From assembly GCA_002269645.1 (NCBI GenBank), contig NIVC01003158.1, forward strand, positions 103,390 to 167,389: a DNA stretch of 64,000 nucleotides, given 5' to 3'. The first letter of the stretch is position 1; every line of letters starts with the position of its first letter. The position numbers and the translations under genes were made by a program. Of the stretch, positions 4,074 through 62,712 are shown in pieces. Under the pieces are notes generated by a model that did no database searches, had not been told where the DNA came from, and saw nothing but the letters and a program-made list of their open reading frames with translations. Source of the DNA: Macrostomum lignano (Eukaryota).

Positions 4074-19895
<15,822 letters not shown>

Positions 19896-26668: not shown

Positions 26669-38259
<11,591 letters not shown>

Positions 38260-39391: not shown

Positions 39392-40336
39392 CTAGGCCTG
39401 GTCCCTACCAGCAGCCGCCTCCCCATCCAGCTGCTCCCTCAGTCTGGTTGCCACCTCCTGCGCCAGTAGCTGAGCTGGCGACGACAGCGCCTTGGCGCCG
39501 GCCGCCTGGCCTTCGTCCAGACAGGCCGCCAGGCTGGGGTCGATCGGCAGGCAGCCGAGGAAGGGCAGCGCCTTGGCCCTGGCGAGCTCGCGGCCGCCGC
39601 CGCTGGAGAACGGGTTGCTGCAGCCGGCGCAGTGCGGGCAGGCGAAGCCGCTCATGTTCTCCACGATGCCCAGCACGGCGAGGCCCGTCTTGGCGCAGAA
39701 GTCCAGCTCGCGGCGGACGTCGCCGACGGCCACGATTTGCGGCGTCGTGACGGCCACCGCGCCGCGCCTGCGGCAGGCCGAGCCGACTGGTAGCGCCTCC
39801 AGCACTGCCAGGTGCTCGTCCGTGGTTCCCGGAGGTGTGTCCACCTGGGATGGGCCGGGGAAAGGGTGGAGGCTGACACTGCCGACTGAGGATGCCGCTG
39901 GGCCCTAACCCCACACTACTGCAGTGCTGCCACTTACCACCAGGTAGTCCAGCCGCTGCCAGTGCACATCCCGCACAAACTGGCCCACCATGCTGGTCTT
40001 CTTCGGGCCCCGCCAAATCACTGGATCGTCTCGACCTTCCAACAGGAAGCCGATCGACATGACTAGGAGTTCGGCGCCGTCTGAGGAAGCTCCGGGCAGC
40101 CTCAGGTGCACCGGCACCCAGCCCTCCGGGCACTGGTGAACCCGCTGGCCCTCCAGACCCAGCATTCGCGGCACACTGGGCCCGCACAGGTCGATGTCCA
40201 GCAGGCCGACCCTGTGGCCCGCCTGTGCCAGGGCCAGCGCCAGCTGCACGCTGACTGTCGACTTTCCGACGCCGCCTTTGCCGGACAGGACCAGCAGAGC
40301 CGTGTCGATCCGGGGACTGCCGCTGCCTTCGGACAT
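39392..40336 (-). CDS. NUBP2: Cytosolic Fe-S cluster assembly factor NUBP2/Cfd1, 2 exons, ~283 aa
   Basis: Exons 40336-39938 and 39844-39392 with a 93-nt intron. [49 protein letters not shown] motifs. Lacks the N-terminal Cys cluster of NUBP1. Confidence 0.92.
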
Positions 40337-40389
40337 CAGCAATTGCAGCGAGGTTGGCTGTCTGTCTAGCCAAATATGAGGCACTTACA

Positions 40390-41045
40390 TAGCCTGAGAT
40401 GGTGTTAACCAAGCCTGAGATAAAGTGTTTACCAAGCCCGAGAATGTGTTTACCAAGCCTGAGATGAAGTGCTTACCTAGCTTCAGATAGTGTTTACCAA
40501 GCCTGAGATTGAGTGTTTACCTAGCCTGAGAAAGTGTTTACCTAGCATAAGATAGTGTTTACCTAGCCTAAGATAGTGTTTACCTAGCCTGAGATAGTGT
40601 TTACCAAATCTGAGAAAGCGTTTACCGAGCTTCAGATTGTGTTTACCTAGCCTAAAACAGTGTTTAACTAGCCTAAGATAGTGTTTACCTAGCCTAAGAT
40701 AGTGTTTACCTAGCCTGAGATAGTGTTTACCTAGCCTAAGATAGTGTTTACCTAGCCTAAGATAGTGTTTACCTAGCCTAATATAGTGTTTACCTAGCCT
40801 GAGATAGTGTTTAAATCTGAGAAAGTGTTTACCTAGCTTCAGATTGTGTTTACCAAGCCTGAGATGAAGTGTTTACCTAGCTTCAAATAGTGTTTACCCA
40901 GCCTAAGATAGTGTTTACCAAGCCTGAGATAGTGTTTAGTTGAGCCTAAGATAGAGCGTTTAGTTAAGACTAAGATAAAGTGTTTACCTAGCCTGAGACA
41001 GAATGTTTACCTGAGACTTGAGAGGGAGTGTTTAGCTAGCCTCAG
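40390..41045. repeat. ~20-21-nt minisatellite in the RBM7-NUBP2 spacer
   Basis: Copies of GATAGTGTTTACC(T/A)AGCCT(A/G)A. Confidence 0.9.
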
Positions 41046-41393
41046 GTTGAGTATAATCTAGTAAGCATATGCATATAAAAAATACAAGCCAGCACCGTCA
41101 TCAATTTAGCTTCATAAAAGCACCGGAATTTTTACAAGAGAGAAACAATCACTTAGTACAGTACTTATAGTAGACAGAAGGAGCGCACTGCTTACAGTGC
41201 CCAGTGAAAAACTGTTTACAAGCGAATTGATGCACATTATTTACGAGCTATTCAAAGCTGAAACTCAAATTAGAAACAAAAAAGCTGCTCAAATGCATCG
41301 CAGACTGAAAAAATCAATATTGATCGATCCAGGAACCCCGACGCGAATAGATTTTTTTAAATTGTCGTTAGCTCGTATTGGCAACCGTATTGT

Positions 41394-43256
41394 TTAAAAT
41401 CGGGCCTGCTTATTTCGGCCATAGTGGCTGTTGAATCCGCTGTCGCTGGTTGATCGCTTAATGCCGTGCTGATGATGGTGGCGCTGATTCTGATGATGCT
41501 GCTGGTGATGGTGCTGATGCTGCTGATGTTGCTGGTGGTGCTGATGATGCTGCTGATGATGGTGCTGCTGGTGGTGAACAACTGGCGGAGGGAGCGGCGG
41601 CGGCGGCGGCAGCAGAAAGTTGCCAGCTTGCTGATGCTGGCGCTGATGCGGCGGCAGCTGCGGCGGCGGCAGAAGGGGGAAGCTTGGCGGAGGCGGCGGC
41701 GGCATCGGAGGCTGCGGAAGCTGGCGGTGGCGCTGATGCTGCCGCCGGTGGTCGCTGCGGGCCTCCCGAGCGGCTCTGTCGGCCCGTTCCCGGTCGGCCA
41801 GCCGCTCTGTCGGCAGAATTTCCTGCCACTGGCGCTCGTGGCCGCTGCCCTGGCGCGGCTTCACGAGGAGTTCGGCGCCGCACAGGCGCAAACTCTGTGC
41901 AACAAGATGCCGGGATGGCGGGTGAGCTCATCTACCTGTGACAGTATCTGTAATAATACTCACTACCTGTGACAGTATCTGTAATAATACTCACTACCTG
42001 TGACAGTATCTGTAATAATACTCACTACCTGTGACAGTATCTGTAATAATACTCACTACCTGTGACAGTATCTGTAATAATACTCACTACCTGTGACAGT
42101 ATCTGTAATAATACTCACTACCTGTGACAGTATCTGTAATAATACTCACTACCTGTGACAGTATCTGTAATAATACTCACTACCTGTGACACAGCTTGCA
42201 TCACTGCCTGTGGCACTACTTGCATCACTGCCTGTGGCACTACTTGCATCACTGCCTGTGGCACTTGCATCACTGCCTGTGACACTTGCATCACTGCCTG
42301 TGACACTTGCATCACTGTCTGTGACACTTGCATCACTGCCTGTGACACTTGCATCACTGTCTGTGACACTTGCATCACTGCCTGTGACACTTGCATCACT
42401 GTCTGTGACACTTGCATCACTGTCTGTGACACTTGCATCACTGCCTGTGACACTTGCATCACTGTCTGTGACACTTGCATCACTGCCTGTGACACTTGCA
42501 TCACTGCCTGTGACACTTGCATCACTGCCTGTGACACTTGCATCACTGCCTGTGGCACTTGCATCACTGTCTGTGACACTTGCATCACTGTCTGTGACAC
42601 TTGCATCACTGCCTGTGACACTTGCATCACTGTCTGTGACACTTGCATCACTGCCTGTGACACTTGCATCACTGTCTGTGACACTTGCATCACTGCCTGT
42701 GACACTTGCATCACTGCCTGTGACACTTGCATCACTGTCTGTGACACTTGCATCACTGCCTGTGACACTTGCATCACTGCCTGTGACACTTGCATCACTG
42801 CCTGTGACACTTGCATCACTGCCTGTGACACTTGCATCACTGTCTGTGACACTACTTGCATCACTGCCTGTGACATTTGCATCACTGCCTGTGACACTTG
42901 CATCACTGCCTGTGACACTTGCATCACTGTCTGTGACACTTGCATCACTGCCTGTGACACTTGCATCACTGTCTGTGACACTACTTGCATCACTGCCTGT
43001 GACATTTGCATCACTGCCTGTGACACGGCATCTGGCAGACGCCACTTACCCTAAACAGGCGGCAGGCATAGAGCACCGACTCCTCGTGTTTGAAGGTGAC
43101 GAACGCGTAGCCATTTTTGCCATCCTTGCCGGCCACGAGTTTCACGGGACACTCGAGCGGGCCGGACTGCAGGAAGAGCTCGGTGAGCAGGTCCGCAGTC
43201 ACATCGGGGCCCAGGTTGCCAACCCACAGGGTTCTCTCGCGGCTATTGTCGTCCAT
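41394..43256 (-). CDS. RBM7: RRM protein of the RBM7/RBM11 family, 2 exons, with a Q/H/P-rich tail
   Basis: Exons 43256-43050 (MDDNSRERTLWVGNL...ELFLQSGP...GYAFVTFKHEESVLYACRLFR) and 41894-41394 (SLRLCGAELLVKPRQGSGH...). Phase 0. The FKHEESV and RxGSxH signatures match the RBM7 family. Confidence 0.85.
41935..43026. repeat. Two abutting arrays filling the RBM7 intron (31-nt x ~8, 21-nt x ~39)
   Basis: GTGACAGTATCTGTAATAATACTCACTACCT (41935-42185), then GACACTTGCATCACTG(C/T)CTGT (42186-43026). Confidence 0.95.
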
Positions 43257-43344
43257 GAAGTCCAGAAACGCTGCAGAAGTAAAATGCACCATTGTGAATG
43301 CTTTGAGATACTTGGGGAATGCTTTCTGAAGGACCAGGAAGTAA

Positions 43345-44040
43345 CAGCTCACTGAATGATCGAGAGAGGGGTGCAGCAGCTCACTGAATGATCAAGAGAG
43401 GGGTGCAGCAGCTCACTGAATGATCAAGAGAGGGGTGCAGCAGCTCACTGAAGGATCGAGAGGGGTGCAGCAGCTCACTGAAGGATCGAGAGAGGGGTGC
43501 AACAGCTCACTGAAGGATCGAGAGGGGTGCAGCAGCTCACTGAAGGATCGAGAGGGGTGCAGCAGCTCACTGAAGGATCGAGAGGGGTGCAGCAGCTCAC
43601 TGAAGGATCGAGAGGGGTGCAGCAGCTCACTGAATGATCGAGAGGGGTGCAGCAGCTCACTGAAGGATCGAGAGAGGGGTGCAGCAGCTCACTGAATGAT
43701 CGAGAGGGGTGCAGCAGCTCACTGAAGGATCGAGAGGGGTGCAGCAGCTCACTGAATGATCGAGAGGGGTGCAGCAGCTCACTGAATGATCGAGAGGGGG
43801 TGCAGCAGCTCACTGAAGGATCGAGAGAGGGGTGCAGCAGCTCACTGAATGATCGAGAGGGGTGCAGCAGCTCACTGAAGGATCGAGAGAGGGGTGCAGC
43901 AGCTCACTGAAGGATCGAGAGAGGGGTGCAGCAGCTCACTGAATGATCGAGAGGGGTGCAGCAGCTCACTGAATGATCGAGAGAGGGGTGCAGCAGCTCA
44001 CTGAAGGATCGAGAGAGGGGTGCAGCAGCTCACTGAAGGA
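43345..44040. repeat. 30/32-nt minisatellite in the CSTF2-RBM7 spacer
   Basis: Copies of GATCGAGAGGGGTGCAGCAGCTCACTGAA(G/T). Confidence 0.95.
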
Positions 44041-44351
44041 CAAGGACAAGGCGGGAACCTGATACAAACAGCTTCTGATATGCACACTCAGTAAAAAATG
44101 AATACTGAAACCTAGAAGCCAAAAATATTTTGCACAGGAACATTTTATTTGATCATATTGAACAGTCATTGAGTAGCAAACATTACAGAATGACAGCAGA
44201 GTTGATTAGCTTTTGCATTGTCCTATCAACAGTTTACTAGTAGCCAGTCAGTACCGGAACACCAGCAGAGATCAGCAGGAACAATGCCTGATGCCTAAAC
44301 CGGCACTAAACCAGAGTGAATAAATGACAGCGGCAATGAGCACACATTGAG

Positions 44352-46176
44352 TCAGATGTGACCAGCCTTGGCCAGCTGCTCTTTCAGAATCATGATGGAC
44401 CGGCGCTGGTCCTCAGGCAGCATGTGGATTTGCTCATCTGACAGCTGCAGCACCTGCATGATGAGCGCCGCCTTCTCCTGATCTCCGCCGGCGATGGCGC
44501 CCATCGACAGCTGAGCGCCGCCGCCCTGCGAAGACTGCGGCTGCTGCGGTTGCTGCGGCTGCGCCTGGGGCGGCGGCGGCGGTGGCGGCTGGCGGTACGG
44601 CTGCTGCTGCTGCTGCTGCTGCTGCGGGTAGATCTGCTGCTGATGCTGTGGTGGCGGAGGCGGCGGCGGTTGGTGATGGTGGTACATCTGCTGCTGCATC
44701 GGAGGCTGCGGAGGCTGAGGCGGCTGGTGCTGGTAGTGCTGCTGCTGCTGCTGCATTGGCTGATCGACTGGCATCACGGGCGGAATCTGCTCAGTGGTTC
44801 TGCTCAGCATAGCGATGGCCACCTTGGGGTCAACCAGCTTCATCACAATCTGAGCCTGCAGCAGGGCGTAGGCCAGCTGTGGGTTCTGCAGCAGCATGTT
44901 GCGGGCCTCGTGTGGGTTGTTCTGAATGCACTGCTTCATCTGGCGCATCAGCTCGAACATCTGCTCGGGCGGCAGGCTGGCAACCGCCCGGCTGATCTCC
45001 TCCGGCGCGTTCTTTGGGTCCACCTGGGCGGGTTGGGGTTGGTTTTTTACCTGAATTTACATTGTTGTTTCTTATCCCAGCTTTTCACTCATCTCGCTTA
45101 TCACACCCCTCTTGCTTAACATGTACTCTTCCTTGTCCTTATCCCCTTCCTTCTCCCTAATCCCCTTTCCTTGTCTCTAAAACCCTTTCCTGTCCCTAAT
45201 CCCCTTCTCTGTCCCTTATCCCCTTCCCTATCCCTAATCCCCTTCCCTGTCTCTAATCCCCTTCCCTATCCATAATCCCATTCATTGTCCCTTATCCCCT
45301 CCCTCTCCCTAATCCCCTTCCCTGACCTTTATCCCCTGCCCTGATCCTTATCCCTTTTTTGTCTCTTATCCCCTTCCTTGACCCTTATCCCCTTCCCTGA
45401 TCCTTATCCCTTTTTTGTCCCTTATCCCCTTCCCTGACCCTTATCCCCTTCCCTGTCCCTTATCCCCTTCCCTGATCCTTATCCCTTTTTGTCCCTTATG
45501 CCCTTCCCTGACCCTTATCCCTTTTTGTCCCTTATGCCCTTCCCTGATCCTTATCCCTTTTTGTCCCTTATCCCCTTCCCTGATCCTTATCCCTTTTTTG
45601 TCCCTTATCCCCTTCCCTGACCCTTATCCCTTTTTTGTCCCTTATCCCCCTCTGTGTCCACATCCACTGCCGCTTATCCCTCCCTACAGCATACAGAATG
45701 CCAAGAGCTCCCGCTCCCACCTTCTCCCCATAAGGCGAGTCCACAGGCGGGCCGGAGACGCCGGAGCCATGGCTCTGGCCATCCTGCTGTTGCTGCTGCT
45801 GCTGCTGGTTCTGCTCGCCAGCGGCCGGGCCGATGCGCAGCGGCCTGCCGCAGAACTCGATATTCTGCAGATTGCGCAGGGCAGCCTGGGCGGTAGGCAG
45901 GTCCTTATACTCGCAGAAGCCGTAGCCCTTGGGCTTGCCGGTCTCCCTGTCGTACACGAGGCGGAAGCCGATGACGGGCCCGGCCTGCTCGAACATCTCC
46001 TTCAGCCGGTCCTCGGACGCTTCGTAGGGGATGTTGCCGACGAATATGGAGCGAGCGGTCCGCTCCAGGGCCTCGCGCTCGCGCTGGCCTTGGCTTTGCC
46101 TGTCAGCCGCGGCTTGCTGCTGCTGAAGCATTTGCTGCTGCTGCTGCTGCAGTTGCTGGGGGCCTGGGGCTGCCAT
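44352..46176 (-). CDS. CSTF2: Cleavage stimulation factor 64-kDa subunit, 2 exons, ~375 aa
   Basis: Exons 46176-45721 (RRM SIFVGNIPYEASE...RETGKPKGYGFCEY) and 45023-44352 (hinge VASLPPEQMFELM...; C-terminal QEKAALIMQVLQLSDEQIHMLPEDQRRSIMILKEQL). Phase 0. AATAAA at 44149-44144. Confidence 0.95.
45125..45645. repeat. Degenerate ~19-nt pyrimidine/purine-biased array in the CSTF2 intron
   Basis: Copies of CCTTATCCCCTTCCCTGA(T/C) with variants. Confidence 0.85.
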
Positions 46177-46257
46177 TTTGGATTGCTGAAATTCAACAGA
46201 GTTATAGCGCTCCGTGATTAGGTGCGCTTGTGAGATAAGGCTAGCTCAAGGACTTCG

Positions 46258-47688
46258 GAAGCAGCAGCCTTACTCAAGTGACATGGAGGGGAAGCAGCAG
46301 CCTACTCAAGTGACAGGGAAGCAGCAGCCTACTCAAGTGACAGGGAAGCAGCAGCCTACTCAAGTGTCAGGGAAGGGAAGCAGCAGCCTACTCAAGTGAC
46401 AGGGAAGCAGCAGCCTACTCAAGTGTCAGGGAAGGGAAGCAGCAGCCTACTCAAGTGACAGGGAAGCAGCAGCCTACTCAAGTGACAGGGAAGCAGCAGC
46501 CTACTCAAGTGACATGGAGGGGAAGCAGCAGCCTACTCAAGTGACATGGAGGGGAAGCAGCAGCCTACTCAAGTGACATGGAGGGGAAGCAGCAGCCTAC
46601 TCAAGTGACATGGAGGGGAAGCAGCAGCCTACTCAAGTGACATGGAGGGGAAGCAGCAGCCTACTCAAGTGACATGGAGGGGAAGCAGCAGCCTACTCAA
46701 GTGACATGGAGGGGAAGCAGCAGCCTACTCAACTGACAGGGAAGCAGCAACCTACTCAAGTGACAGGGAAGCAGCAGCCTACTCAAGTGACATGGAGGGG
46801 AAGCAGCAGCCTACTCAAGTGACATGGAGGGGAAGCAGCAGCCTACTCAAGTGACATGGAGGGGAAGCAGCAGCCTACTCAAGTGACATGGAGGGGAAGC
46901 AGCAGCCTACTCAAGTGACATGGAGGGGAAGCAGCAGCCTACTCAACTGACAGGGAAGCAGCAACCTACTCAAGTGACAGGGAAGCAGCAGCCTACTCAA
47001 GTGACATGGAGGGGAAGCAGCAGCCTACTCAAGTGACATGGAGGGGAAGCAGCAGCCTACTCAAGTGACATGGAGGGGAAGCAGCAGCCTACTCAAGTGA
47101 CATGGAGGGGAAGCAGCAGCCTACTCAAGTGACATGGAGGGGAAGCAGCAGCCTACTCAACTGACAGGGAAGCAGCAACCTACTCAAGTGACAGGGAAGC
47201 AGCAGCCTACTCAAGTGACATGGAGGGGAAGCAGCAGCCTACTCAAGTGACATGGAGGGGAAGCAGCAGCCTACTCAACTGACAGGGAAGCAGCAACCTA
47301 CTCAAGTGACAGGGAAGCAGCAGCCTAATCAAGTGACATGGAGGGGAAGCAGCAGCCTACTCAAGTGACAGGGAAGCAGCAGCCTACTCAAGTGACGGGG
47401 AAGCAGCAGCCTACTCAAGTGACAGGGAAGCAGCAGCCTACTCAAGTGACAGGGAAGCAGCAGCCTACTCAAGTGACAGGGAAGCAGCAGCCTACTCAAG
47501 TGACAGGGAAGCAGCAGCCTACTCAAGTGACAGGGAAGCAGCAGCCTACTCAAGTGACAGGGAAGCAGCAGCCTACTCAAGTGACAGGGAAGCAGCAGCC
47601 TACTCAAGTGACAGGGAAGGGAAGCAGCAGCCTACTTAAGTGACAGGGAAGCAGCAGCCTACTCAAGTGTCAGGGAGGGGAAGCAGCA
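46258..47688. repeat. 27/32-nt minisatellite in the ZCCHC4-CSTF2 spacer
   Basis: Copies of GCAGCAGCCTACTCAAGTGACA(TGGAG)GGGAA. Confidence 0.95.
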
Positions 47689-47857
47689 GTTTCCTACGAA
47701 CTTGAGAAGCAACAAAGAAAACAAAACAGAAAACGAAGATGTTTAGACTTCAAGAAGATTGAGCACGGTGTATTCTGGCGGTTACAGGTAGAAAAATGCA
47801 TTAGAAATGTACAGAGCAGATTTGTTCATCGCAAGCAAATGTATCTCTGTAAGCAGC

Positions 47858-49793
47858 TTAGTTCTCCTTCGCCGACAAACCAGACCGGCAGCCGTGAGAG
47901 TCGATATACTTGGCCTTGACGCATCTGTTGCAGCGCTGGCAGTGCAGCCGGGCAGGCGGGTGCAGCGTGGCGCACGTGCCACAGGCTGCACAATGCGGAT
48001 TCCAGTGGGCCGAGTGGCGGGCGCAGACGGAGCACCAGCTGGTGCCGGGAGGCGGCGGCAGGCGGGACTCGGGCACGTTGGAGAACAGCCGGACGGCAGA
48101 GACCGAGGCGCTGCGCAGCTTGGCGTGATTGGCGTAGGTCAGCTGGCAGTCGTGCAGGCTGAGCCGGGGCCGCAACCACCGCTTGCCCAGGTAGTAGGGC
48201 GCCGCCACGGCTGTGAACACCTGGCGGGAGTTCGGGGAGGCGTTGGCGCTCGGTTGCTGTGAATAGGACAGGTGAGACAGATCTAATAGGACAGGTGAGA
48301 GATCTGATAGGAGATCTGATAGGACAGGTGAGACAGATCTGATAGGACAGGTGAGACAGATCTGATAGGACAGGTGAGACAGATCTGATAGGACAGGTGA
48401 AACAGATCTGATAGGAAAGGAAACAGATCTGATAGGACAAGTGAGAGATCTGATAGGACAGGTGAGACAGATCTGATAGGAAAGGAAACAGATCTGATAG
48501 GACAAGTGAGAGATCTGATAGGACAGATGAGAGATCTGATAGGACAGGTGAGACAGATCTGATAGGACAGATGAGAGATCTGATAGGACAGGTGAGAGAT
48601 CTGATAGGACAGGTGAGAGATCTGATAGGACAGGTGAGAGATCTGATAGGACAGATGAGAGATCTGATAGGACAGGTGAGACAGATCTGATAGGACAGAT
48701 GAGAGATCTGATAGGACAGGTGAGAGATCTGATAGGACAGGTGAGAGATCTGATAGGACAGGTGAGACAGATCTGATAGGACAGGTGAGAGATCTGATAG
48801 GACAGGTGAGACAGATCTGATAGGACAGGTGAGACAGATCTGATAGGACAGGTGAGACAGATCTGATAGGACAGGTGAGACAGATCTGATAGGAAAGGAA
48901 ACAGATCTGATAGGACAAGTGAGAGATCTGATAGGACAGTTGAGACAGATCTGATAGGTCAGGTAAAAACAAGAGTTGCTTACCTCGCAGTGGCCGGCAG
49001 CCGCGGCGAGATCTGCCAGGTGCTGCAGGCAGTCCATCAGGGGGGTCAGCAGGCCGCCAAAGGGCGGGTCGGCCACAATGAGGCAGACGGAGTCCGAGCG
49101 CCGCTTGGCCGCCAGCCAGCTGACGAATCTGTCTCGCCCATCCGGTCGCAGGAACGCGGCGTTGAACATGTTGAAGGCCAGACAGTCGGGGAAGAATTCG
49201 GCCAGCCGCAGGTCGGCGTCAAGCAGGAGGCTGCGGCAGCGCCGGCCGCCGATGGCGTAGCGGGCGGCCTCGTGCAGGCGGGGGCAGCCGACGCAGACAA
49301 GCCGCTGGCAGCGGAGGCGGCGCACCAGGCGGAGCAGGTAGGCCAGGCTGGGCGGGGAGAAGAAGTACTGCGAGGACTGCCGGGCGGTGAGCGCCGGCAG
49401 GAAGCCGGTGGGGGCCAGCAGGCGCCGCTTCGGTAGCCGCGGCAGCAGCCGGTGGGTGGCGCAGGCCGCCAGCTCGGAGCTGCCGAGTGCCAGCCGGCCG
49501 CAGTCCAGGCAGTAGGCGCGCAGCCGGCGCGGCGTGGCGAGGGCTTCGTCCAAGCGGCAGCAGTTTGGCGCCGACAAGGCGGAGGCCGCGCCGGACTCGG
49601 CCGAGCAGGCGCCAGGCCGCCTGGTGAAGGAGCAGCAGTGGCGCCGGGTGAATCGACCGGCGCCGTCGCGCAACACCAGGGCGAGCATGGGGCCGTGTAG
49701 CGGACAGGCGGGCGCAGCCACCTCAGCCGCATCATGGCCAGACTGCTGTATGGAGGCCACCTGTAAAGCTGGGCGCCGATCTCGACTTCGCAT
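47858..49793 (-). CDS. ZCCHC4: rRNA N6-adenosine methyltransferase ZCCHC4, 2 exons, ~402 aa
   Basis: Exons 49793-48984 and 48256-47858, phase 0. APACPLHGP (GRF-type finger start), SSQYFF, VCVGCPRLHE, LLLDADLR, catalytic DPPFGG, YANH, and the C-terminal Cys/His cluster CSVCARH...HCAACGTC...HCQRCNRCVK. Confidence 0.9.
48262..48962. repeat. 23/21-nt minisatellite filling the ZCCHC4 intron
   Basis: Copies of ACAGGTGAGA(CA)GATCTGATAGG. The last unit forms the polypyrimidine tract of the acceptor at 48257. Confidence 0.95.
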
Positions 49794-50654
49794 GAGGATG
49801 GACTGCTGAAAATTGCGTGCCAGAATATTTGATGAGATCGAGCCCAGGACCTCGGCAGGTGAATCTTGAGGCAAGATATGGGGCAACTATGAGCCCAAAG
49901 CTGGAGACCGGGCAAAAAGGCCTCGAGAATCCGCAGGATTCGACTCGAGAGAGAAAGAGGAGGGAAGGACCTCTAAATATTGTATGGCAAGAATAGACAT
50001 CGAACCAATGACCTCCTAAAACTAGTATTAGTAGCTATAGTATCGAACTTTGATAAGAGTTCGAGCCTAGGACCTCTAGACTTATACGAGCGTATGCACA
50101 GACTAGAGATGGGAGCCAAAAGTAAAACAAAAAATACGAAAGAATTGGTAAAACCACAAGAACAAGCAATGTCTGCTTTTATTAAAGAAACAGTAAACTG
50201 ACCATAATCGGCGAGAATGCATATGAAAATCACCGCCAGCCAGCAGGTGCCAACCGCACTGGCCGCTCAATATTACACTTGTCTGGGCGCACCTGGGCTC
50301 GATTAAGTTTAGCATACTACTGACAAGCCTGCACAAAATAGTAGTAACACACTAAAGCAAACTCACTAGAGCTCCGAAAACTACCAAATCAAGAAAATAA
50401 ATTTGCGAACTTCAGTTCCCAAGTTGGGAAATTGAAATGAGAAAGCGGTTGCACCAGAGCCAACAATTTAACTGAGGAGCTTCGAAGTTTTAGCCCTTGA
50501 ATAAAATTGGCGAAACGTAAGCATTAGAAGGACTGCAATGGATAGTGGACAGGCGAGTTACAAATGAGGGCGCATTAAACAATGAACACAGGTGGTCTGG
50601 GACCTTTTGTGCTCAGAAAATTTAACTTTGTATAAAGTTCACGATGTGACAAAG

Positions 50655-51420
50655 GATTTTGGAGTAACTGGGGCGACCTCAATGATGTAGCAGAGAGGAT
50701 TCTGGAGTAACTGGGGCGACCTCAATGATGTAGCAGAGAGGATTCTGGTGTAACTGGGGCGACCTCAATGATGTAGCAGAGAGGATTCTGGAGTAACTGG
50801 GGCGACCTCAATGATGTAGCAGAGAGAATTCTGGAGTAACTGGGGCGACCTCAATGATGTAGCAGAGAGGATTCTGGAGTAACTGGGGCGACCTCAATTA
50901 TGTAGCAGAGAGGATTCTGGAGTAACTGGGGCGACCTCAATGATTTAGCAGAGAGGATTCTGGAGTAACTGGGGCGACCTCAATGATGTAGCAGAGAGGA
51001 TTCTGGAGTAACTGGGGCGACCTCAATGATGTAGCAGAGAGGATTCTGGAGTAACTGGGGCGACCTCAATGATGTAGCAGAGAGGATTCTGGTGTAACTG
51101 GGGAGATCTCCACGGTGAGACAGAGGATTCTGGAGTAACTGGGGCGATCTACGTGATGTGGCGAGGAGGATTCTGGAGTAACTGGGGCGACCTCAATGAT
51201 GTAGCAGAGAGGATTCTGGTGTAACTGGGGCGATCTACGTGATGTGGCGGAGAGGATTCTGGAGTAACTGGGGCGATCTACGTGATGTGGCGGAGAGGAT
51301 TCTGGAGTAACTGGGGCGATCTACGTGATGTAGCAGAGAGGATTCTGGAGTAACTGGGGCGATCTACGTGATGTGGCGGAGAGGATTCTGGAGTAACTGG
51401 GGCGATCTCCGTGATGTGGG
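50655..51420. repeat. 43-nt minisatellite in the UBFD1-ZCCHC4 spacer
   Basis: About 18 copies of GGATTCTGGAGTAACTGGGGCGACCTCAATGATGTAGCAGAGA. Confidence 0.95.
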
Positions 51421-51761
51421 AATTTGAGCAGAAAGCGGTTCTGTCACAAGCGCAGCAGGCAGCATTCGCCAGAGCGCTTAAATCGTTACTGTTTGGCCCC
51501 TGAAGTAGGCAAAGGGTAGCGGCAGCCAGTCAAAGTGCAAAAACCTTGCCGCAAAAATTATGCCTAGCGAATAGAGACCAGAGTTTATCTCGGGCAGTGT
51601 TTTACAGCAGAGGGCGCGTACGCTATTAGAGAAAAAAATAATTTACCGAGCGAACGGAACAGAATGATTACGCAACTGAAAGTAGATCTAAGGAACACAA
51701 CTATGTAACAAGTAGAAAGCCTTCATTCGCGCATGCAGTTGAACCTTTGCAACTCTGCAAA

Positions 51762-54700
51762 TCAAGTACCAATAGTGGTTTGAATAGCTCGTACGTACTG
51801 GCAGGGCACCCAGTACAGCCAGTACATGGACTGCTCTGTGGTGCCCAGCTGCAGTCCGACAATGTGGTGCGCCTCCTGGCCTTCGATGGGCTCGCTGACT
51901 ATCCGCTTGATTGACGACATCGGGATCTTGTTGGTGCGCTCCTTAGTTCCGATCCACAGCTGGTCGATTTCCAGCTTGAATGTCAATCGAACCTGCGGGC
52001 AGGCAGGCGGATGCTGGCGGTTCTCGTGTTGGTGGGGGCGATTCTCATGTTTGATGGGGCGATTCTCGTGTTGGTGGGGGCGATTCTCGTGTTGGTGGGG
52101 GCGATTCTCGTGTTGGTGGGGGCGATTCTCATGTTTGGGGGGGGGCGATTCTCGTGTTGGTGGGGGCGATTCTCATGTTTGGGGGTGGCGATTCTCGTCT
52201 TGGTGGGGGCGATTCTCGTGTTTGGGGGGGGCGATTCTCGTGTTGGTGGGGGCGATTCTCGTGTTGGTGTAGGCGATTCTCGTGTTGGTGGGGGCGATTC
52301 TCGTGTTGGTGGGGGCGATTCTCATGTTGGGGGGGGGGCGATTCTCATGTTTGGGGGAGGGCATTCTCAGCATGGGGGGCATATTCATTTTGGGGGGAAT
52401 TCTCATGTTTGGGGGGCGATTCTCATGTTTGGGGGATTTTTATGTTTGGGAGGCGATTCTTATGTTTGGGGGGGGGGTGTGATTCTCATTTTGTAGGGGC
52501 AATTATCATGCCGGTGGGACAACTCCAGTCTTAGTTGCAGTTCAGGTCAAACGGCCCCAAATACCTTGGCACCCTGCCGATTGTACATGCCACTAAGCGG
52601 GGCCGGGGGCAGCGGCAAGTTGGCATTGAGAATTCCGGGCGTCAGGTCGTCCGGCCGGCCGTACTTGTCCAGCACTCGGCGGTGCAGGTCACGCTGCGAC
52701 AGACGAACCGCGCCAGCGCCATCTGAGTTGCCTGGATTGTTCGCTTTCGACCTGCGGACCAACGTTTGAGCGAAATTGCTCACCCGGACACAGACATCCC
52801 ATCTCGGCCAGGCCACAAGCAGACACAAGTGGACACAGACACATCCCATCTCGGCCAGGCCACAACCAGACACAAGTGGACACAGACACATCCCATCTCG
52901 GCCAGGCCACGAGCAGACACAAGTGGACTCAGACACATCAAATCTCGGCCAGACCACAACCAGACACAAGTGGACTCAGACACATCCCATCTCGGCCAGG
53001 TCACAAGCAGACACAAGCGGACGGACACATCCCATCTCGGCCAGGCCACAACCAGACACAAGTGGACACAGACACATCCCATCTCGGCCAGGCCACAAGC
53101 AGACACAAGTGGACTCAGACACATCCAATCTCGGCCAGGCCACAACCAGACACAAGTGGACTCAGACACATCCAATCTCGGCCAGACCACAACCAGACAC
53201 AAGTGGACTCAGACACATCCAATCTCGGCCAGGTCACAAGCAGACACAAGCGGACGGACACATCCCATCTCGGCCAGGCCACAACCAGACACAAGTGGAC
53301 ACAGACACATCCCATCTCGGCCAGGCCACAAGCAGACACAAGTGGACTCAGACACATCCAATCTCGGCCAGGCCACAACCAGACACAAGTGGACTCAGAC
53401 ACATCCAATCTCGGCCATGCCACAAGCAGACACAAGCGGACGGACACATCCAATCTCGGCCAGGCCACAACCAGACACAAGTGGACACAGACACATCCCA
53501 TCTCGGCCAGGCCACAAGCAGACACAAGTGGACTCAGACACATCCAATCTCGGCCAGACCACAAGCAGACACAAGTGGACTCAGACACATTCAATCTCGG
53601 CCAGACCACAACCAGACACAAGCGGACACAGACACATCCCATCTCGGCCAGGCCACAAGCAGACACAAGTGGACTCAGACACATCCAATCTCGGCCAGAC
53701 CACAACCAGACACAAGTGGACTCAGACACATCCAATCTCGGCCAGACCACAACCAGACACAAGCGGACACAGACACATCCCATCTCGGCCAGGCCACAAG
53801 CAGACACAAGTGGACTCAGACACATCCAATCTCGGCCAGACCACAACCAGACACAAGTAGACTCAGACACATCCAATCTCGGCCAGGCCACAAGCAGACA
53901 CAAGCGGACGGACACATCCAATCTCGGCCAGGCCACAACCAGACACAAGTGGACACAGACACATCCCATCTCGGCCAGGCCACAAGCAGACACAAGTGGA
54001 CTCAGACACATCAAATCTCGGCCAGACCACAACCAGACACAAGTGGACTCAGACACATCCAATCTCGGCCAGGCCACAACCAGACACAAGTAGACTCAGA
54101 CACATCCAATCTCGGCCAGGCCACAAGCAGACACAAGCGGACGGACACATCCAATCTCGGCCAGGCCACAAGCAGACACAAGCGGACGGACACATCCAAT
54201 CTCGGCCAGGCCACAAGCAGACACGGACACATCATATATCGGCCAGGCCACAACCAGACACAAGCGGACACAAGCGGACAGACACATCCAATTTCGGCCA
54301 GGCCACAACCAGACACAAGCGGACACAAGCGGACAGACACATCCAATCTCGGCCAGGCCACAACCAGACACAAGCGGACAGACACATCCAATCTCGGCCA
54401 GACCACAATCAGACACACCACCTCACACACGAGCTGAATCGCCTACCTGACATCAGCCGCTTCGCCAGCCGCGTCCTGACGCCGTACCGACGCCAAGCTG
54501 TCCGGCGTGCTGCCCACGAGCATCAGCTTGGCACCGTCGCCGACCCCGAGCTCACTGAGTCGCCGATCGTCATGGCAGAGGCCTCTGAACATGAGCTTCT
54601 GCATGTCAACCGGAACGCCAGTCAATTCCTGAAGCTGCCGTTTCAGAGAGATGACCTTAGCCGAGACCGGCAAGGTCAGGTCAATCTTGCGCTTATTGAA

Positions 54701-54877
54701 GATGACCTTTAGCGACACTGGTGGGGAGTCTGCATCCGCTTCCACTTCCGGTTCTGCGGCCGCTTCTTCTGCTGCCTCTTGAGTCGGTGATGAGCCCTCT
54801 GGTGCTGCCTCATCGCCATCTGCACAGATGGAAGTCTGCGGCTGCATCTCAGCAACTGTCGTGTGGTCTTCGCTCAT
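51762..54877 (-). CDS. UBFD1: Ubiquitin family domain-containing protein 1, 3 exons, ~282 aa
   Basis: Exons 54877-54447 (UBL: LKVIFNKRK...LTGVPVDMQKLMFRGL), 52751-52565 (HRRVLDKYGRP...PLSGMYNRQGAK) and 51992-51762 (VRLTFKLEIDQLWIGTKERT...YWLYWVPCQYV). Phases 2 and 0 are consistent. Confidence 0.92.
52017..52495. repeat. ~21-nt minisatellite in UBFD1 intron 2
   Basis: Copies of GGCGATTCTC(G/A)TGTT(G/T)GTGGG. Confidence 0.9.
52783..54420. repeat. 47/45-nt minisatellite filling UBFD1 intron 1
   Basis: Copies of ACACATCC(C/A)ATCTCGGCCAG(G/A)CCACAA(C/G)CAGACACAAGTGGAC(A/T)CAG. Confidence 0.95.
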
Positions 54878-56769
54878 AGCTCTAGGTAACATAAAAGTCA
54901 GAATTCAAATGTACGAGTAATAGCCCACCCCAGCAATTTTGAGGAAGGCTATTAGAACATATTGGCAAAGAAAAAGGAACACTCAACTCAACATTTAAAA
55001 AAACTATTATGAAGATTATTAGTCTATTTTTTATTTTATAAGTTTAAAGATCTGATACAGATTTTTATATTTTTCATTTTACTCATCAATAAGTCCTTAA
55101 AACTAAACAAATGGCATCCCAACTGAGATTTAAAAATTCAAAACTAGGCAATACTACCAGTTGAAAAATGAAATTAGTGTTTATACAAATTCATACATTG
55201 GCAAGAGCTTTGGCCCAAAACAAAAATAACACAAGGGATTCAATAAACTGTTCCACTTTAAAGACAAAATATCTAGACTTATTTTTGATATTATTTGAGT
55301 AAAAAATAGACAAAGTGAAAGTTTAAAGTCTTGAAATGAGCAATATAGCTGTGATCATGCTATATTAATTGAGTTTTTCTCTTTATATCTAAAGCTGAGT
55401 AGACTGGTCGATTGACCAGGTTTAACGCATATGTCCTCTTAGACGGCTGCCAACTCAAATGCGGGACTTATATATATCAATGCAGAATTTTTCTATGCAA
55501 CAAATAGGCTATTTTAATGTTGAATTTTTTTAAATTAAGTCTGTTAAAAAGCAGAAAACTGGTTTGTTAACCTTCTTTGGCCACTTTTCCTGCTCTGAAC
55601 TGAAAATTTGCATCAATTTTGAGCAATTGCACCACAACTTTTTCCTATCTTGGCAGTGCATTTTCTCTCCAATATGGGTTTTGGGGAGTTTTAAGTGGCT
55701 GCATTTGTACACTTGGACCCTTGCTAACTGGCGAACAGTAAAATTCAATGCATAAACTTGCAAGCCTCTCACTGTAGCAAGCAGTGAATATACACTAAAA
55801 AATTCAATGCTTTAAACTGGGAAGTTCAAATGCAAACTGTTCCTTAAGTTTTAAACTTTCAAAGAAAAGACTTATATTGCTAGAAAGATCTTTCAATGGT
55901 GAGTTTGGGAATATAAGTTTTTTGCTTTAAGTATGAAAAATAAAAGCACAGCATTCAAAGAAACAATTTCTATTCTTTTAACTTTCTGCAAAGATTGTAC
56001 ACATTTTGGGATTGAATGGGGTTTCAACTGACCCCTACCAGTTGGGGGGTTTCAATTTTTAATTGCCACTGTAGTGGAAGGGGGTTGGTTGCTGTGTATT
56101 GGAGGGTTGATTTAGACTGCACAATCATTTTGTTAACTTTAATTGAGACTGATACTGACAGACAGAGAAATTGATTGTGCAACCAATTGTTTTACTTGGT
56201 TCAATTTTTATAGTATCAGCACCTTTGAACACATAGCTCTAAGCAGCTCTAACCTTAACCCTAGCCACCAAGTCCAGAGAGTTGTTTTTTATTTGATGGT
56301 GAGGCTTTTGATGGTTTTCAGTTTCATGGAAAAGATTTCTATTTTGTGGAGAGGATTTTGATGATGTTCAATTTTATGGAAAGGATTTTTTGGAGATTCT
56401 TTGGAGATTAATTGAATGAGGGGATTTGAGTCAAGGGATTCAGCTGATGGATTTCAAGGAATGGAATTCCAGTGACAGGAGTTCTTCCCTTTTCTCCTCT
56501 AGCAGAGGAGTTGGCCTCATTTTTCTACTTGTATATAGCAATAAAAATATTATAAAGTCAGAAATTTCAACTTATTAAAGCTATACCATAATATGAATTT
56601 TATAGGCCTTCATTTTGCTTATTGAAAAAAGCCACAGGAAAGCAGTTTAAAAAATAATAAAACAAAACTTGAAAATCAACACTTAACAAATGCTTGATTG
56701 TTTTTTTTAAATATAAAAGAAAAAGGCTAGAAACATGCAATTTTGTCTTCTTGAAGGTATGGAAGCATC

Positions 56770-57520: not shown

Positions 57521-60500
57521 AAAGGTCTAGAAGCTCTACCTAGTTAAAGGCTACTGACCAACAAAGTCAATGCTGATGCAGACACATTATCAATGTGCTG
57601 ATAAAATTTGGAGGCTTGGCAAGGCTATATTGAGGCATAGTACTGATTGGCACACTGGGGTATATTGACTGTACTAATGTTTATAGGAAAATCTGACTTG
57701 GCAGAATTGTTGAATATCTTAACAGTCTGGATGGCTGGCAACTAGGCCATTCCATATAATTATGGTTGTAATATAACAGACTATTTTTACTTATAAAATG
57801 AAATCTAAAAATAGAATATACTAAACCAATATTTTAAATGAAAGATTATTTTGTCAAGAATATGTTTATAAAGTTTCATATAGATATTATCATTACTTAT
57901 AGATGCTATTAAACCTTGAATGGCACTTATGGTTGTAACAACAGGATTTTTGACATATAGAAACTAAAAGGTAAAAGTCTTATAACATTTTTCATTTTTT
58001 TATATTTTGCAATAGTTTTTTTAAATTTGATTAAGAATATCTTTAGAAGTCATACTCTTTTATTAGAATATATAAACTCAAAAAGGCAACAAAGATACAA
58101 AAGAAAAGGCAGCCTTATGGTTGTAATATTATGGTCGTAACATTTTTTTCTGTCAATTCAGTAACTTTGAAGTACTGATATATTAAAAATATAATAGATT
58201 ATATGGTTGCTAATGTTTTTATCTGATGATGCAAGTACTATAATTTTAGGTATATATAGTTTGTTTTAACCTTTTAAAGCTTTCTATTTGTTTTTAAAAG
58301 GTAGGCCTACATAAACTTAATGATGTCTTTTGCTTAGAAAATGTCCAATTTTTTACAAAAATAACTTTTTGCCAATTGATGATATACTAATCCAACATTT
58401 TATCATTTATTTATTCTTAGATTGTATACATTACATACAAAAAGATTTAGTAAAAAAATTGGCTGATAAGGCAATGACAAGCAAAAATATTGACTTTTAT
58501 TTTCTAAATATGTCCATCTTATATGGAATGCGCCAACTTGATTCTTGTTTGAGAAGGTATACAACAAAAAGTTAGCTTAAGTTCTTTGTGTGCCTACATT
58601 GCTCCAGTATGGTGCAGCAAATATTGTCAAGGAAGGGAGAAATTTTTCCACTTTTTGGTAGTTTGACAGGCAGAAAAATGGCTTGGTAATCCTATTGTTA
58701 ATATGTACTAGTAGCAAAGTTCTTTGTTATAGTCAATTGCCACTTTAAAACTAGTTGTACTTCCACAAATGGCATAATCCAACTTGAGATTATTGGTTGT
58801 CTAGCCATCCAGAGAGTAGGGGTCTAAAAGCAGAAAAGTAAGCAATGGCTTAGGATTAACATAGAATCCTAATTTTCTGAACGAAAAGCTTTATAAATAT
58901 CGATAGAGCAATAAAAAAGGCACAACATATCAAAAGATGAACACTGGATCTGCCTCCTATCAAACGCAATAACAATTTTTGTGCTGAAAAAATGAAAACT
59001 TCCTATCTCCGTAGTGTATTTTTTCGGGAAAAAGTGCCTTCAAAACTTTTCTAAGAAACGAGGTTTCCCGTCCTTCTACTTAAGTCGTCCTTGGTTTTAG
59101 GGAGACCGATCGGAGAATTGTAGTAAGTAGTAGTAAGAGAATTTGGCTCAGGCAATTAGCCTATTTGGCCAATATATTATAGAGCTATGTATTTGGGTCG
59201 TTCTTAAAGTTTAGCGTAAGCAGTGAAACAAATATTTTTGAAAATCAGCCTGAAATATTAAATCTTTTCTTATTGTAGCTCTAAAAGGACTTAAAATATA
59301 AATGCCTCTCATGGGTCTTAATCTTTTTTAACATTGAACTTTTGATGTTAATCTCAACAGAGTGCGCTATTTCATTTTTCGATATATATTTTTATTATCG
59401 CACGAGCTATAATACCCACTTTAGAGAAGCTACATTCTGTTCACGTGGTCTTATTAAAGAAGAAAATTGATAAATGTTATTTATATCTTTGGTTAGCACA
59501 ACCTAGAACCCATTTAACTCTTTCGATTGCAAAGCAGATGTTGTTATTTCGATTTTCGCTAGAAACGTAACATTATTAATGATTAAAAAATCCACTTTTA
59601 ATTAATTTGTTCTGTTGATGGAATCAGCTAATAGCTGCGTTTTCTGATGTTTTTTTAAGAAAGATAGTCATATCTAACACTAAAGTATCAATTAAGGCAG
59701 TTTCATTCAATATAAAAAAAGAAAAGTTAATTAAATTCAATTTTAAGTTTTTTTCAATAGCACAAAATTAACCTAACAAAGAGAGATTTAGCTGACTACA
59801 ACAAAGCAAGTAGCACCAAAGTTATTTTAATTCAAAGTCCTCATCTGTGGGATGAGAAAAAGTACCACTTTTTTGTCTCTAGTTATGAAAAAAAATTTTC
59901 TCAGCACATTGTTAGGTTTTTTGGATGTTTTTTTATGTATTTAGATGAATTTTTGCTATTGATCACCCAATACGAGCGTATGTTAGTCAGAACAAACAGA
60001 ATTTGATTTATGTAGATAAAATCGACTATTTTTCTCTTAAAAACAGTCGTTTTTTGTTGTTTTCACTCAAAAATTTTTTTAACTGATTTAAAATTTGTAT
60101 TGTAAGTTACAAGTAAACATAATGAGTCAAAACAAGAGGTAGTAGAAACTGAAAAGAAAATAAGAGTAACGAATAATAAAAAAGTTGCATGATTTGATCA
60201 GTCAAGAAATAGTATTAAAACAATTTTGCATCTGATTTATTATCAATGAAATTATCTGTCTGAAGCACAAAAAATTAATTTCTTTGAAACATTAAATTCA
60301 TTCTCATATGTGCTGCACTTCATTAAAGATATACATGTAGCAACTTAAACATTCAGTTGATACTTTGCACCTTTGGATGCATATAGCTACTAACAAAAAA
60401 AAGATAAAAGAAAAAACTTAATTGCCATTGATGCTGGCAATGTAATATTAAATATGGTACAGAAAGATGGAATCTCTACAGAGTGCTGCCACACGAATTT

Positions 60501-62712
60501 GTGAAGTGTTTAACAGATTAGTCATGGCAGTCCCATAACAGACATACTATATTTTATATTTACTCTTCGATTGACAATTACGCTTTAGATATGTTTTAGA
60601 TGATGATTTTCCATTGGGACTGACTCTATATATACCGAGGCCGGACACAGTTAAGTGCGGCTGACAGCACTGAAGCGGCGATAAACAGAGAATGCGATGA
60701 GCTGTGGCCTGTGGAGACAGCCATCTGATGTACGAGCATCAGTAGAAGGGAAAGAAATCCAATAGTGTCTTGCTATTGGTTTGTTACATGTACAGCGAAC
60801 ATCTACTTTTATTCTAATGTGATCGATTTAATTCTACTGACCCAATTGGCTAAAGCACTGTAAACTGCACACATCTCGGACGGATATGTAATGCCATTTG
60901 CTGCACTTTTACCTGTTTCTCTGCCAGAACACCAGCATCATTGTATGTGCCACAATGCTAAGATGTGCAGCGGTCCTTTGGATGTGGTTAGTTCTGCAGG
61001 CATCGACGTAATTTATCAAATGAGACGAATTGTATACCGAGCATGACAGCTAGTGCAGGGCCAGAATTGATTACAGAGGTTCGCCAGAGCAATTGCAGTG
61101 ATCCATGTGGCTGCCAAGTCAGACGTCTGTAATAGGCCAACTCACCAAGACCAAAGTATTTAATTTAAATTTATGGCTCTGTTCTTTTAGTAGTTATGCA
61201 GCCTAATTACATAAGAAAATAGTATTGTAAAATAGTAAAATAGTATTAAAGCTATGTTGCAGAATATAAATGCTTGCTGAGTTCTTTTTCAAAAAAACGC
61301 AAGTCTGTTCGAAAAAAAGATACATGTATTTTAGGTTTTAAAAGAAATGGCTTCCTAGCTCATTTACTATATATTTCTAATTCAAAGAACTTTTAATGCT
61401 TTAAAAGACATATTTTGCAAGCCTAATTTTTAGCTAAACCAGTTTTGTAGATTTTAAGCTTCATATTTCAGTGTTAAGTACAATAATTAAGTTCTTGAGT
61501 GGTACAATATCAATTATTTCGGGTGTTTCTTGTTACGCGATAATTTTAAATACAAGCAATTTAGACGAAAAAAACAAAATGCTGATTTAAAAATAATATT
61601 TTCTATTGAAATAATACTTATTAAATAGTAAACATAAAATAAAAATGTATCTTATTTATAAAAAATAAAAGAAAACTTGCATTATTTCACAATTTTTGGT
61701 CGTTTTATTTTCCGTTGCGAAAAATAACAAATTGCTAGATTTCGTCTTAAATATTTGGTTTCTTGTGGTTTTAACGGCAGTTTCTTAATTAAATTGACGA
61801 AAGAATCGTTTTTGCAAAATAATTACTTTATTCAAAAACTTTTTTTTCTGTACCAAAACATCATGACCTTAATTTGAGAACTACCCATTTGGATCGGGGG
61901 TTGTTTCTTGCCGCGTTCAAATCGGTGCTGGATTTCCGGCGGTTCGACAAGTTAAACAAACTCGGGGTGCAGATTGGAGCTCAGGCTGCTAAGTTCCTCA
62001 GGCTCAGGGAGAGGGTAGCTGTGGTCGTAGCCGGGCGGTCTTGTCTTGATGCTGTCTCTTTCAATGCCAATTGCAGATTAGTCGCTACGCGGAGAACTTA
62101 ATAAAATAAACGAATTCGCTAAATATAGTACCAGAAGAAGTAGTAGGTCGCTGCCACCACCGCAGTAATTCACGTAGAAAAGCTTTAAGACGTAATTAGC
62201 TTGAAATAACCTAAGCACTTCTCTTTGATTATAGACTGCAAGGGGTCGATTAATGCTTTCCGAGGTCACAAAAGCTTGACAACTAAACAGCTTAAAATGA
62301 TTTACTGCGCTTGAAATTTACGCGTCCGAAGAGAAGATGGTATACGAGTTCTAGTCTTTATGATTAAAGTTCAAAAAAAGCCAGTAGAAACAATTCATAT
62401 TTAATTTATATTCCTTCCCTCTGGGAACGGCGCAGCGAATCGCAGGCGAATCGCCGGCGAGGACGCGATTTAGTGGCGATTTTTTTTCTTGGCAAAATAT
62501 TGCCTCTGGGGATTTCAAACAAATGTGGTTCACGAAAAAAAATTGGTCATTTCATTTTTTCTTGCTTTAAAATGGGCGATTCAGTGGCGATTTGGTGACG
62601 AGTGATCGCCAGCGAATAATCGCTGGCGAATAGCCATCGAAATCGCTAGCGATTTTTTTTACAAGAAAATTTTTGTTTTGCATATTAAATGATTAAAAAA
62701 TGAATTTGCAGT

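Follow-up and report, generated by a model that had tools for sequence, protein, structure and literature searches.

In the model flatworm Macrostomum lignano, about 15% of the genes have been assigned to operons, and precursors bearing several trans-splice sites account for about 7% of the assembled transcriptional units (PMC8629364, PMC5730564), the share of genes in operons being similar to that in C. elegans (PMC8629364). A single spliced leader (SL) of 35 nt, CGGTCTCTTACTGCGAAGACTCAATTTATTGCATG, is received by about 30% of the genes (PMC8629364, PMC5730564). Neighbouring genes are assigned to an operon in this species when less than 1 kb separates them after the authors' subtraction of repeats, the mode being near 100 bp; inflation of operon spacers by repeats is known there (PMC8629364). 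The locus described here is a cluster of five genes in the last 64 kb of the M. lignano scaffold NIVC01003158.1 (GenBank assembly GCA_002269645.1, Mlig_3_7), and this whole stretch of 64,000 nt is referred to below as the window. Read along the minus strand, the cluster contains UBFD1, ZCCHC4, CSTF2, RBM7, and NUBP2, and on balance it probably constitutes a five-gene operon with UBFD1 as the first gene. The favoured interpretation, a polycistronic cluster that is trans-spliced to the SL and whose spacers are inflated by repeats, matches the biology described for M. lignano (PMC8629364). Locus L004 is identical to the reverse complement of the window, and further copies of the cluster occur in Mlig_3_7 on paralogous scaffolds (L003, L005, and L006).

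A first-pass annotation of the same DNA had recognized five housekeeping genes on one strand, and this description is upheld, since the minus strand carries all five and Pfam, PDB, and orthologue matches agree with the names given to them. UBFD1 (51762..54877) has three coding sequence (CDS) exons, 54877-54447, 52751-52565, and 51992-51762, whose junctions match those of GenBank PAA52960.1 exactly; it contains a Pfam ubiquitin domain, its best PDB match is the Ubl domain of mouse UBFD1 (1v86), and PF25343 (PH_UBFD1_C) is present in UBFD1-named orthologues. ZCCHC4, the 28S rRNA N6-methyladenosine (m6A) methyltransferase (47858..49793; exons 49793-48984 and 48256-47858), contains the N6-adenineMlase domain, with ZCCHC4 itself (6UCA, E=5e-36) as the best PDB match. 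Its predicted protein agrees residue for residue with UniProt A0A1I8H52 (97% by BLASTP) except for one 12-aa gap produced by an alternative acceptor 36 nt downstream. CSTF2, that is, CstF-64 (44352..46176; exons 46176-45721 and 45023-44352), combines RRM, CSTF2_hinge, and CSTF_C domains and finds the CstF-64 RRM as its best PDB match (E=5e-36), while RBM7 (41394..43256; exons 43256-43050 and 41894-41394) contains an RRM domain and is closest to RBM7 in the PDB (E=5e-16). The last gene, NUBP2 (39392..40336; exons 40336-39938 and 39844-39392, separated by a 93-nt intron), belongs to the ParA/NUBPL family and its orthologues share 65-67% identity. The alignment with homologues begins at residues 6-25 in NUBP2, ZCCHC4, and RBM7, and at about residue 35 in CSTF2, behind a 34-residue poly-Q lead. 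An upstream coding exon is therefore unnecessary for these four genes, in line with the first-pass annotation, in which no upstream exon was evident. The N-terminus of UBFD1 is of low complexity, and the homologue-alignment check covers the other four genes only.

The addition of the SL is recorded indirectly at CSTF2 in the assembly itself. Replacement of the 13 nt that precede the CSTF2 exon has given L003 and L005 the sequence ACTCAATTTATTGCATG, an exact copy of the last 17 nt of the SL, which adjoins CAATCCAAAATGG at the exon edge (CAATCC start) in both copies; the window has the native CTGTTGAATTTCAG at this position. This SL imprint (L003 17647-17663; L005 20673-20689; equivalent to 46186-46202 of the window) is present in two of the three copies examined. 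Mlig_3_7 was polished by Pilon with RNA-seq reads (PMC5730564, Methods), and for this reason the imprint is taken to record an SL-CSTF2 junction between positions 46186 and 46185. In its simplest reading, SL-bearing mRNA reads overwrote the CSTF2 acceptor during polishing, so that the replaced bases are most likely an artefact. The trans-splice acceptor of the window copy, TTTCAG, lies at 46186..46191 on the minus strand, 9 nt before the ATG, and ends at the same junction.

The first two genes are connected by read-through transcripts. The GenBank CDS of the window, PAA52960.1 (49046-54883, minus strand), is an out-of-frame UBFD1-ZCCHC4 chimera, to which the join of 54883..54447, 52751..52565, 51992..51799, and 49805..49046 translates exactly, and the L003 CDS PAA48843.1 is also a cis-spliced UBFD1-ZCCHC4 chimera. 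The chimeras use a cryptic donor, CA/GTACGT, in the last UBFD1 exon (51798..51803, minus strand, junction between 51799 and 51798), 39 nt before the UBFD1 stop codon, and join it to TTTTCAG/CAGTCC, which is exactly the acceptor proposed for ZCCHC4 (TTTCAG at 49806..49811, minus strand, junction between 49806 and 49805, 12 nt before the ATG). Since the annotated chimeras splice into this site, the ZCCHC4 acceptor is real and transcription crosses the spacer from UBFD1 to ZCCHC4. Chimeric models have been treated as a sign of polycistronic pre-mRNA in flatworms, where one acceptor often serves both cis- and trans-splicing (PMC12582326). Because PAA52960.1 merges the two genes, the window copy has no proper ZCCHC4 model; in L005, UBFD1 and ZCCHC4 are annotated as separate genes. 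Moreover, older ML2 gene models fuse ZCCHC4 with CSTF2, and ZCCHC4 with CSTF2 and RBM7. Thus, UBFD1 and ZCCHC4 are bridged by annotated cis-spliced chimeras, and ZCCHC4, CSTF2, and RBM7 by ML2 chimeric models only; the bridging evidence ends at RBM7 and does not extend to NUBP2.

The spacer crossed by the chimeras also holds the features that would be expected if the cluster consisted of two units, with a monocistronic UBFD1, a promoter upstream of ZCCHC4 driving ZCCHC4-CSTF2-RBM7-NUBP2, and chimeras arising from occasional read-through. It is the sole spacer with a long unique segment, measured at 859 nt upstream of ZCCHC4 (about 850 nt in the first-pass annotation), and it contains an AATAAA at 50183, 377 nt before the ZCCHC4 acceptor. 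The same spacer reaches 6.3 kb in L005, the copy in which the two genes are annotated apart, and the chimeric product, being out of frame, is non-functional. However, two independent copies have the chimera annotated, with entry at the exact 5' acceptor of ZCCHC4, the additional length in L005 is minisatellite expansion only, and an internal promoter before ZCCHC4 would have to be postulated, so that a division into two units seems rather unlikely.

Acceptor-like sequences precede all five start codons. The AG-ending strings that had been quoted upstream of the ATG are present at 4 nt (UBFD1), 12 nt (ZCCHC4), 9 nt (CSTF2), 14 nt (RBM7), and 29 nt (NUBP2). The published trans-acceptor motif of M. 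lignano, [T/C]TNCAG (that is, YTNCAG), is found on only 44% of published trans-splice sites (PMC8629364), and it is matched by three of the five sites of the cluster, those of ZCCHC4, CSTF2, and RBM7; those of UBFD1 and NUBP2, which end in TAG, depart from it. A YTNCAG lies at most 15 nt upstream of only 2.8-3.6% of the ATGs in the window, and the chance of finding it at three or more out of five ATGs is P < ~1e-3. In RBM7, the proximal acceptor CTGCAG (43271..43276, minus strand, junction between 43271 and 43270) lies 14 nt before the ATG and a second YTNCAG is found at 43331-43326, 69 nt before it; the L003 annotation favours the proximal site. Translation from an SL-derived AUG would run in frame into ZCCHC4 (MQSIL-M…) and CSTF2 (MQSK-M…); in RBM7, it would be out of frame from the proximal site and in frame from the site at 43331-43326. 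For flatworms, initiation at the SL AUG has been documented (Cheng et al. 2006, as cited in PMC12582326).

The NUBP2 site is less sharply defined. The proposed acceptor lies in the last degenerate unit of a minisatellite and is followed by two more AGs within 8 nt, so that the candidate AGs are at 40366, 40362, and 40358. The AG at 40367-40366 is retained in L003 with its context changed from TAG to AAG, and the TAG site is an unproven candidate acceptor. The idea that the SL donates the start codon of NUBP2, suggested by an L003 CDS beginning at codon 2, was dropped, since the window open reading frame (ORF) is complete from its ATG and annotated 5' ends scatter 0-32 nt past proven junctions.

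Across the copies, most annotated CDSs of the five genes are 5'-partial, and those of the four downstream genes start 0-32 nt downstream of the proposed junctions. The distance is 0-2 nt past the proximal junction for the 5'-partial RBM7 CDS of L003, 1-6 nt for CSTF2, and 7-9 nt past the acceptor for the separate, 5'-partial ZCCHC4 CDS of L005. NUBP2 has a 5'-partial CDS in one copy (L003, from codon 2) and is annotated in the window as a complete ORF from the ATG. The TBONE pipeline cuts transcripts at SL sites (PMC8629364, PMC5730564), and 5'-partial CDSs that start near the junctions are the output expected from it. In the favoured interpretation, the SL would also be added to ZCCHC4, RBM7, and NUBP2.

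The UBFD1 acceptor proposed in the first-pass annotation, TTACCTAG, did not hold up. UBFD1 is 5'-partial in all four copies and its annotated 5' ends lie at 54889 in two other copies (LPRAM..), at 54883 in the window (RAM..), and at 54874 in one copy (SEDH..), so that in three of the four copies the annotated transcripts include the AG of the proposed site or start upstream of it. No other AG was found in the 60 nt upstream of 54889, and the window has an in-frame ATG at 54892 that overlaps the proposed acceptor. Because the 5' ends include or precede the AG and no other AG lies within 60 nt, UBFD1 is more likely a promoter-proximal first gene with a very short 5' untranslated region (UTR) that does not undergo trans-splicing. 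The AT-rich unique sequence at 54878..55100 (minus strand) would then be the putative promoter and transcription start site (TSS) region of UBFD1. An A/C difference 3 nt upstream of 54889 was considered as a partial SL imprint over CAG and was not adopted: the match between the SL and the genome is probably too poor for read extension, and the scattered 5' ends of the four copies fit a TSS or a ragged assembly better. Farther upstream, an AT-rich stretch of about 2.7 kb (59200-61887) is absent from L003 and represents an insertion/deletion difference between the copies.

The distances between the genes, given earlier as 1968 nt (UBFD1 to ZCCHC4), 1681 nt (ZCCHC4 to CSTF2), 1095 nt (CSTF2 to RBM7), and 1057 nt (RBM7 to NUBP2) from stop codon to ATG, were reproduced exactly. 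Each spacer contains one minisatellite on the transcribed minus strand: a 43-mer repeated about 18 times at 50653..51417 (765 nt; about 5.1 kb in L005), a 32-mer repeated about 45 times at 46257..47689 (1433 nt; about 530 nt in L003), a 30-mer repeated about 23 times at 43345..44040 (696 nt; about 175 nt in L003), and a 21-mer repeated about 31 times at 40385..41042 (658 nt; about 215 nt in L003), in the order of the genes. Their removal, which is the published procedure, since the authors of PMC8629364 subtract repeats, leaves 1203, 248, 399, and 399 nt, the last three of which agree with the range of about 250-400 nt that had been estimated. Measured from the stop codon to the acceptor minus the Tandem Repeats Finder (TRF) array, the last three distances are 238, 384, and 369 nt and thus within the published limit of 1 kb; the repeat-adjusted distance from UBFD1 to ZCCHC4 is about 1190 nt from the stop codon, or about 350 nt if the 3' end of UBFD1 is near the AATAAA at 50183. 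The layout is shared by the spacers, with 168-351 unique nt after the stop codon, the array, and 48-88 unique nt before the ATG (859 nt for ZCCHC4), and the unique spacer segments have no further copy in the window. A canonical AATAAA before the array is found for CSTF2 only (44149, 202 nt past the stop codon).

The introns of the cluster are almost wholly minisatellite, except for the 93-nt intron of NUBP2, with arrays at 54417-52786 and 52475-52016 in UBFD1, 48964-48263 in ZCCHC4, and 43026-41927 in RBM7. Intron and spacer arrays are alike, and donor-like GTAGG or GTGAG strings occur before and inside some of the arrays. These features, together with the frequent sharing of flatworm acceptors between cis- and trans-splicing, would suit conventional genes in which each acceptor ends a minisatellite-bearing 5'-UTR intron, cis-spliced to a short non-coding first exon with no SL. 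Such an arrangement is contradicted at CSTF2 by the SL imprint in two copies; moreover, the annotated CDSs are 5'-partial, starting at or near the acceptors with no preceding UTR exons, and 45% of the conserved genes of M. lignano are trans-spliced (PMC8629364), which makes it hardly credible for this cluster.

Several arrays carry splice-site-like strings in their repeat units. On the minus strand, YTNCAG recurs in many or all units of the arrays at 43345-44040, 50653-51417, and 41927-42191, as possible decoy splice sites, and a donor-like GTGAG occurs once per unit in the array between CSTF2 and RBM7 (43345-44040) and in the RBM7 intron array (41927-42191). In the former, the exact YTNCAG is present in 13 of about 23 units and GTGAG in all units of the transcribed strand.

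Paralogous copies keep the flanks and the acceptors but differ 3- to 7-fold in the length of the spacer arrays. L003 has a SINE-like (short interspersed element) insertion of about 355 nt (15067-15423), which shows a tRNA-like end and an imperfect target-site duplication; it lies upstream of the ZCCHC4 acceptor at a distance of 34 nt, and the acceptor is still used in this copy. Tolerance of variable array length and of an insertion fits RNA that is spliced out or discarded and fits structured promoter arrays poorly. The opposite idea, that the minisatellites are working parts of intercistronic processing, for example, as decoy or entry acceptors that slow RNA polymerase II or recruit the SL small nuclear ribonucleoprotein, is very unlikely. 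It would fit the YTNCAG motifs carried by many units in two of the four spacer arrays (13-14 per array), the arrays being mostly pyrimidine-rich, and, if it held, expression of the downstream cistrons would be tuned by the number of repeat units.

The freedom of array length between copies also bears on whether the genes could be independent neighbours, each with its own promoter after the preceding stop codon or in the array, the SL replacing a 5' part that includes the minisatellite as an outron, and no polycistron being formed. Unique sequence of 168-351 nt past each stop codon is available for such promoters, about 60% of the trans-spliced genes of M. lignano are not assigned to operons, and a polycistronic RNA from CSTF2 through RBM7 to NUBP2 is deduced, not directly seen. 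However, the promoters would have to share 170-350 nt with the 3' UTR and the poly(A) site of the upstream gene, array length is unconstrained between copies, and the repeat-adjusted distances are within the published operon range. The documented read-through from UBFD1 to ZCCHC4 and the chimeric models spanning ZCCHC4, CSTF2, and RBM7 also speak against separate units, and independence of the five genes is regarded as improbable.

In the preferred interpretation as a five-gene operon, RNA polymerase II would start in the AT-rich region just upstream of UBFD1, the first gene, whose mRNA would have a very short 5' UTR and would probably not be trans-spliced. Transcription would then continue through UBFD1, ZCCHC4, CSTF2, RBM7, and NUBP2, each upstream mRNA being cleaved and polyadenylated, and the downstream cistrons would be capped by trans-splicing of the 35-nt SL (…TTGCATG) to an acceptor 9-30 nt before the ATG. 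The spacer minisatellites of 0.7-1.4 kb may be neutral filler in discarded RNA, either outron or intercistronic sequence or the tail of a 3' UTR, as the intron arrays would be. A single promoter for the five genes would be implied by this scheme, as would continuous transcription from CSTF2 through RBM7 to NUBP2, to which the anatomy of the locus and the chimeric gene models point. Thus, the trans-spliced polycistron put forward in the first-pass annotation gains from the SL imprint at CSTF2, the cis use of the ZCCHC4 acceptor, and the 5' end of RBM7, and loses the UBFD1 acceptor.

Several points weigh against this interpretation. SL addition is evidenced for CSTF2 only, and evidence of read-through is limited to the passage from UBFD1 to ZCCHC4, where the chimera is a minor, out-of-frame, cis-spliced product. 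The support comes from annotation and assembly traces, and ab initio prediction on a frameshift-rich assembly may have produced the ML2 chimeras as artefacts. With a scatter of up to about 30 nt, the annotated 5' ends locate the junctions only roughly, and three of the four internal spacers lack a canonical AATAAA ahead of the array, so that the 3' ends are not placed. Internal promoters could lie in the 859 nt before ZCCHC4 or in the 168-351 nt that follow the stop codons. From the species as a whole, about 60% of the trans-spliced genes are outside operons (PMC8629364), and five-gene operons are rare, 75% having two genes and 18% three (PMC5730564, PMC8629364).

The cluster is bounded on both flanks. 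In the GenBank lists of L003 and L004, all genes across the cluster are on the same strand, as they are in L005 up to CSTF2, where that locus ends, and no opposite-strand gene is called inside the cluster in these lists. Upstream of UBFD1, 9-10 kb contain no called gene in three copies, and on the other side NUBP2 is followed by a convergent gene, which is also called in L003 (on the minus strand there). The last exon of this gene (37900..38259, plus strand) is 94% identical to residues 160-267 of P0248. It has no Pfam match, and its relatives amount to three matches in 1.8 billion representative proteins, the best being the M. lignano protein itself, so that it appears essentially Macrostomum-restricted.

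The scans of the window for RNA genes were negative, with no match to Rfam at gathering thresholds or in tRNA scans; a search of the window for the 35-mer with up to nine mismatches likewise gave no SL RNA gene. An exact look-up of the UniProt models P0121 and P0127 matched no contigs. The supplements of three M. lignano papers held no gene-level trans-splicing data for the cluster; CSTF2/CSTF2T was mentioned twice there, incidentally, in gene lists from Gene Ontology (GO) enrichment. Distant synteny was not seen in Ciona or Owenia, where NUBP2 has no RBM7 neighbour.

The window as a whole is eukaryotic; its exons are GC-rich, its unique non-coding DNA is AT-rich, and it contains dozens of minisatellites. 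A young long terminal repeat (LTR) retrotransposon occupies 6268-19358, with LTRs of 2.2 kb (6268-8486 and 17136-19358) that are 99.7% identical and a minus-strand gag-like ORF (13512-14930). An ARF-family GTPase gene has its exon 1 (19554-19886, minus strand) directly upstream of the retrotransposon, which is probably inserted in an intron of that gene. A 6.6-kb element at 30459-37048, with terminal inverted repeats of 1.9 kb that are 95% identical, is absent from L003 and is therefore a polymorphic insertion. Other repeats include a near-perfect (ATAG)n microsatellite of about 334 units at 28577-29913 and long arrays of a 14-mer (54 units, 27263-28007) and a 20-mer (25 units, 25528-26022).

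The practical value of the locus is partly in annotation, since GenBank merges UBFD1 and ZCCHC4 on NIVC01003158.1 into an out-of-frame chimera. The overwriting of native acceptors by the SL in Mlig_3_7 could be widespread, and overwritten acceptors can bias acceptor-motif statistics; conversely, a search for SL imprints could yield trans-splice junctions at no extra cost. As an operon candidate, the cluster is of modest value, adding an unusually long example to those already described in a model flatworm. With an rRNA m6A methylase, CstF-64, the NEXT-complex component RBM7, an Fe-S assembly factor, and UBFD1, its gene content agrees with the enrichment published for trans-spliced genes, which favours conserved housekeeping genes.

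The closest described systems are the operons of M. lignano itself (Wudarski et al. 2017, PMC5730564; Ustyantsev & Berezikov 2021, PMC8629364), reported in the same species and assembly. The cluster shares with them YTNCAG near the ATG, conserved housekeeping genes, and spacers that are inflated by tandem repeats and measure a few hundred nt after repeat adjustment, and it would also share their single 35-nt SL ending in AUG. Unlike the typical M. lignano operon, it has five genes, whereas 75% of the predicted operons have two and the maximum is nine, and the public annotation merges UBFD1 and ZCCHC4 instead of showing five clean genes. As far as found, the M. lignano literature searched contains no individual description of the locus as an operon. 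With the SL2-type operons of C. elegans, it would share polycistronic transcription by RNA polymerase II, the coupling of upstream 3'-end formation to downstream trans-splicing, and an enrichment in housekeeping and RNA-processing genes. However, C. elegans has a dedicated SL2 for downstream genes and intercistronic regions of about 100 nt, whereas here one SL would serve all positions and the raw spacers, which are filled with hypervariable minisatellites, span 1-2 kb, one paralogous copy reaching 6.3 kb. Parasitic flatworm operons (Calvelo et al. 2025, PMC12582326; Protasio et al. 2012) resemble the cluster in the 3'-terminal AUG of the SL, in acceptors common to cis- and trans-splicing, and in chimeric models that arise from polycistronic pre-mRNA, and differ from it in that the candidates are usually defined by spacers of at most 300 nt. 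The phenomenon, including repeat-padded spacers, is already described for M. lignano, and next to the operons known there the locus is long but otherwise ordinary.

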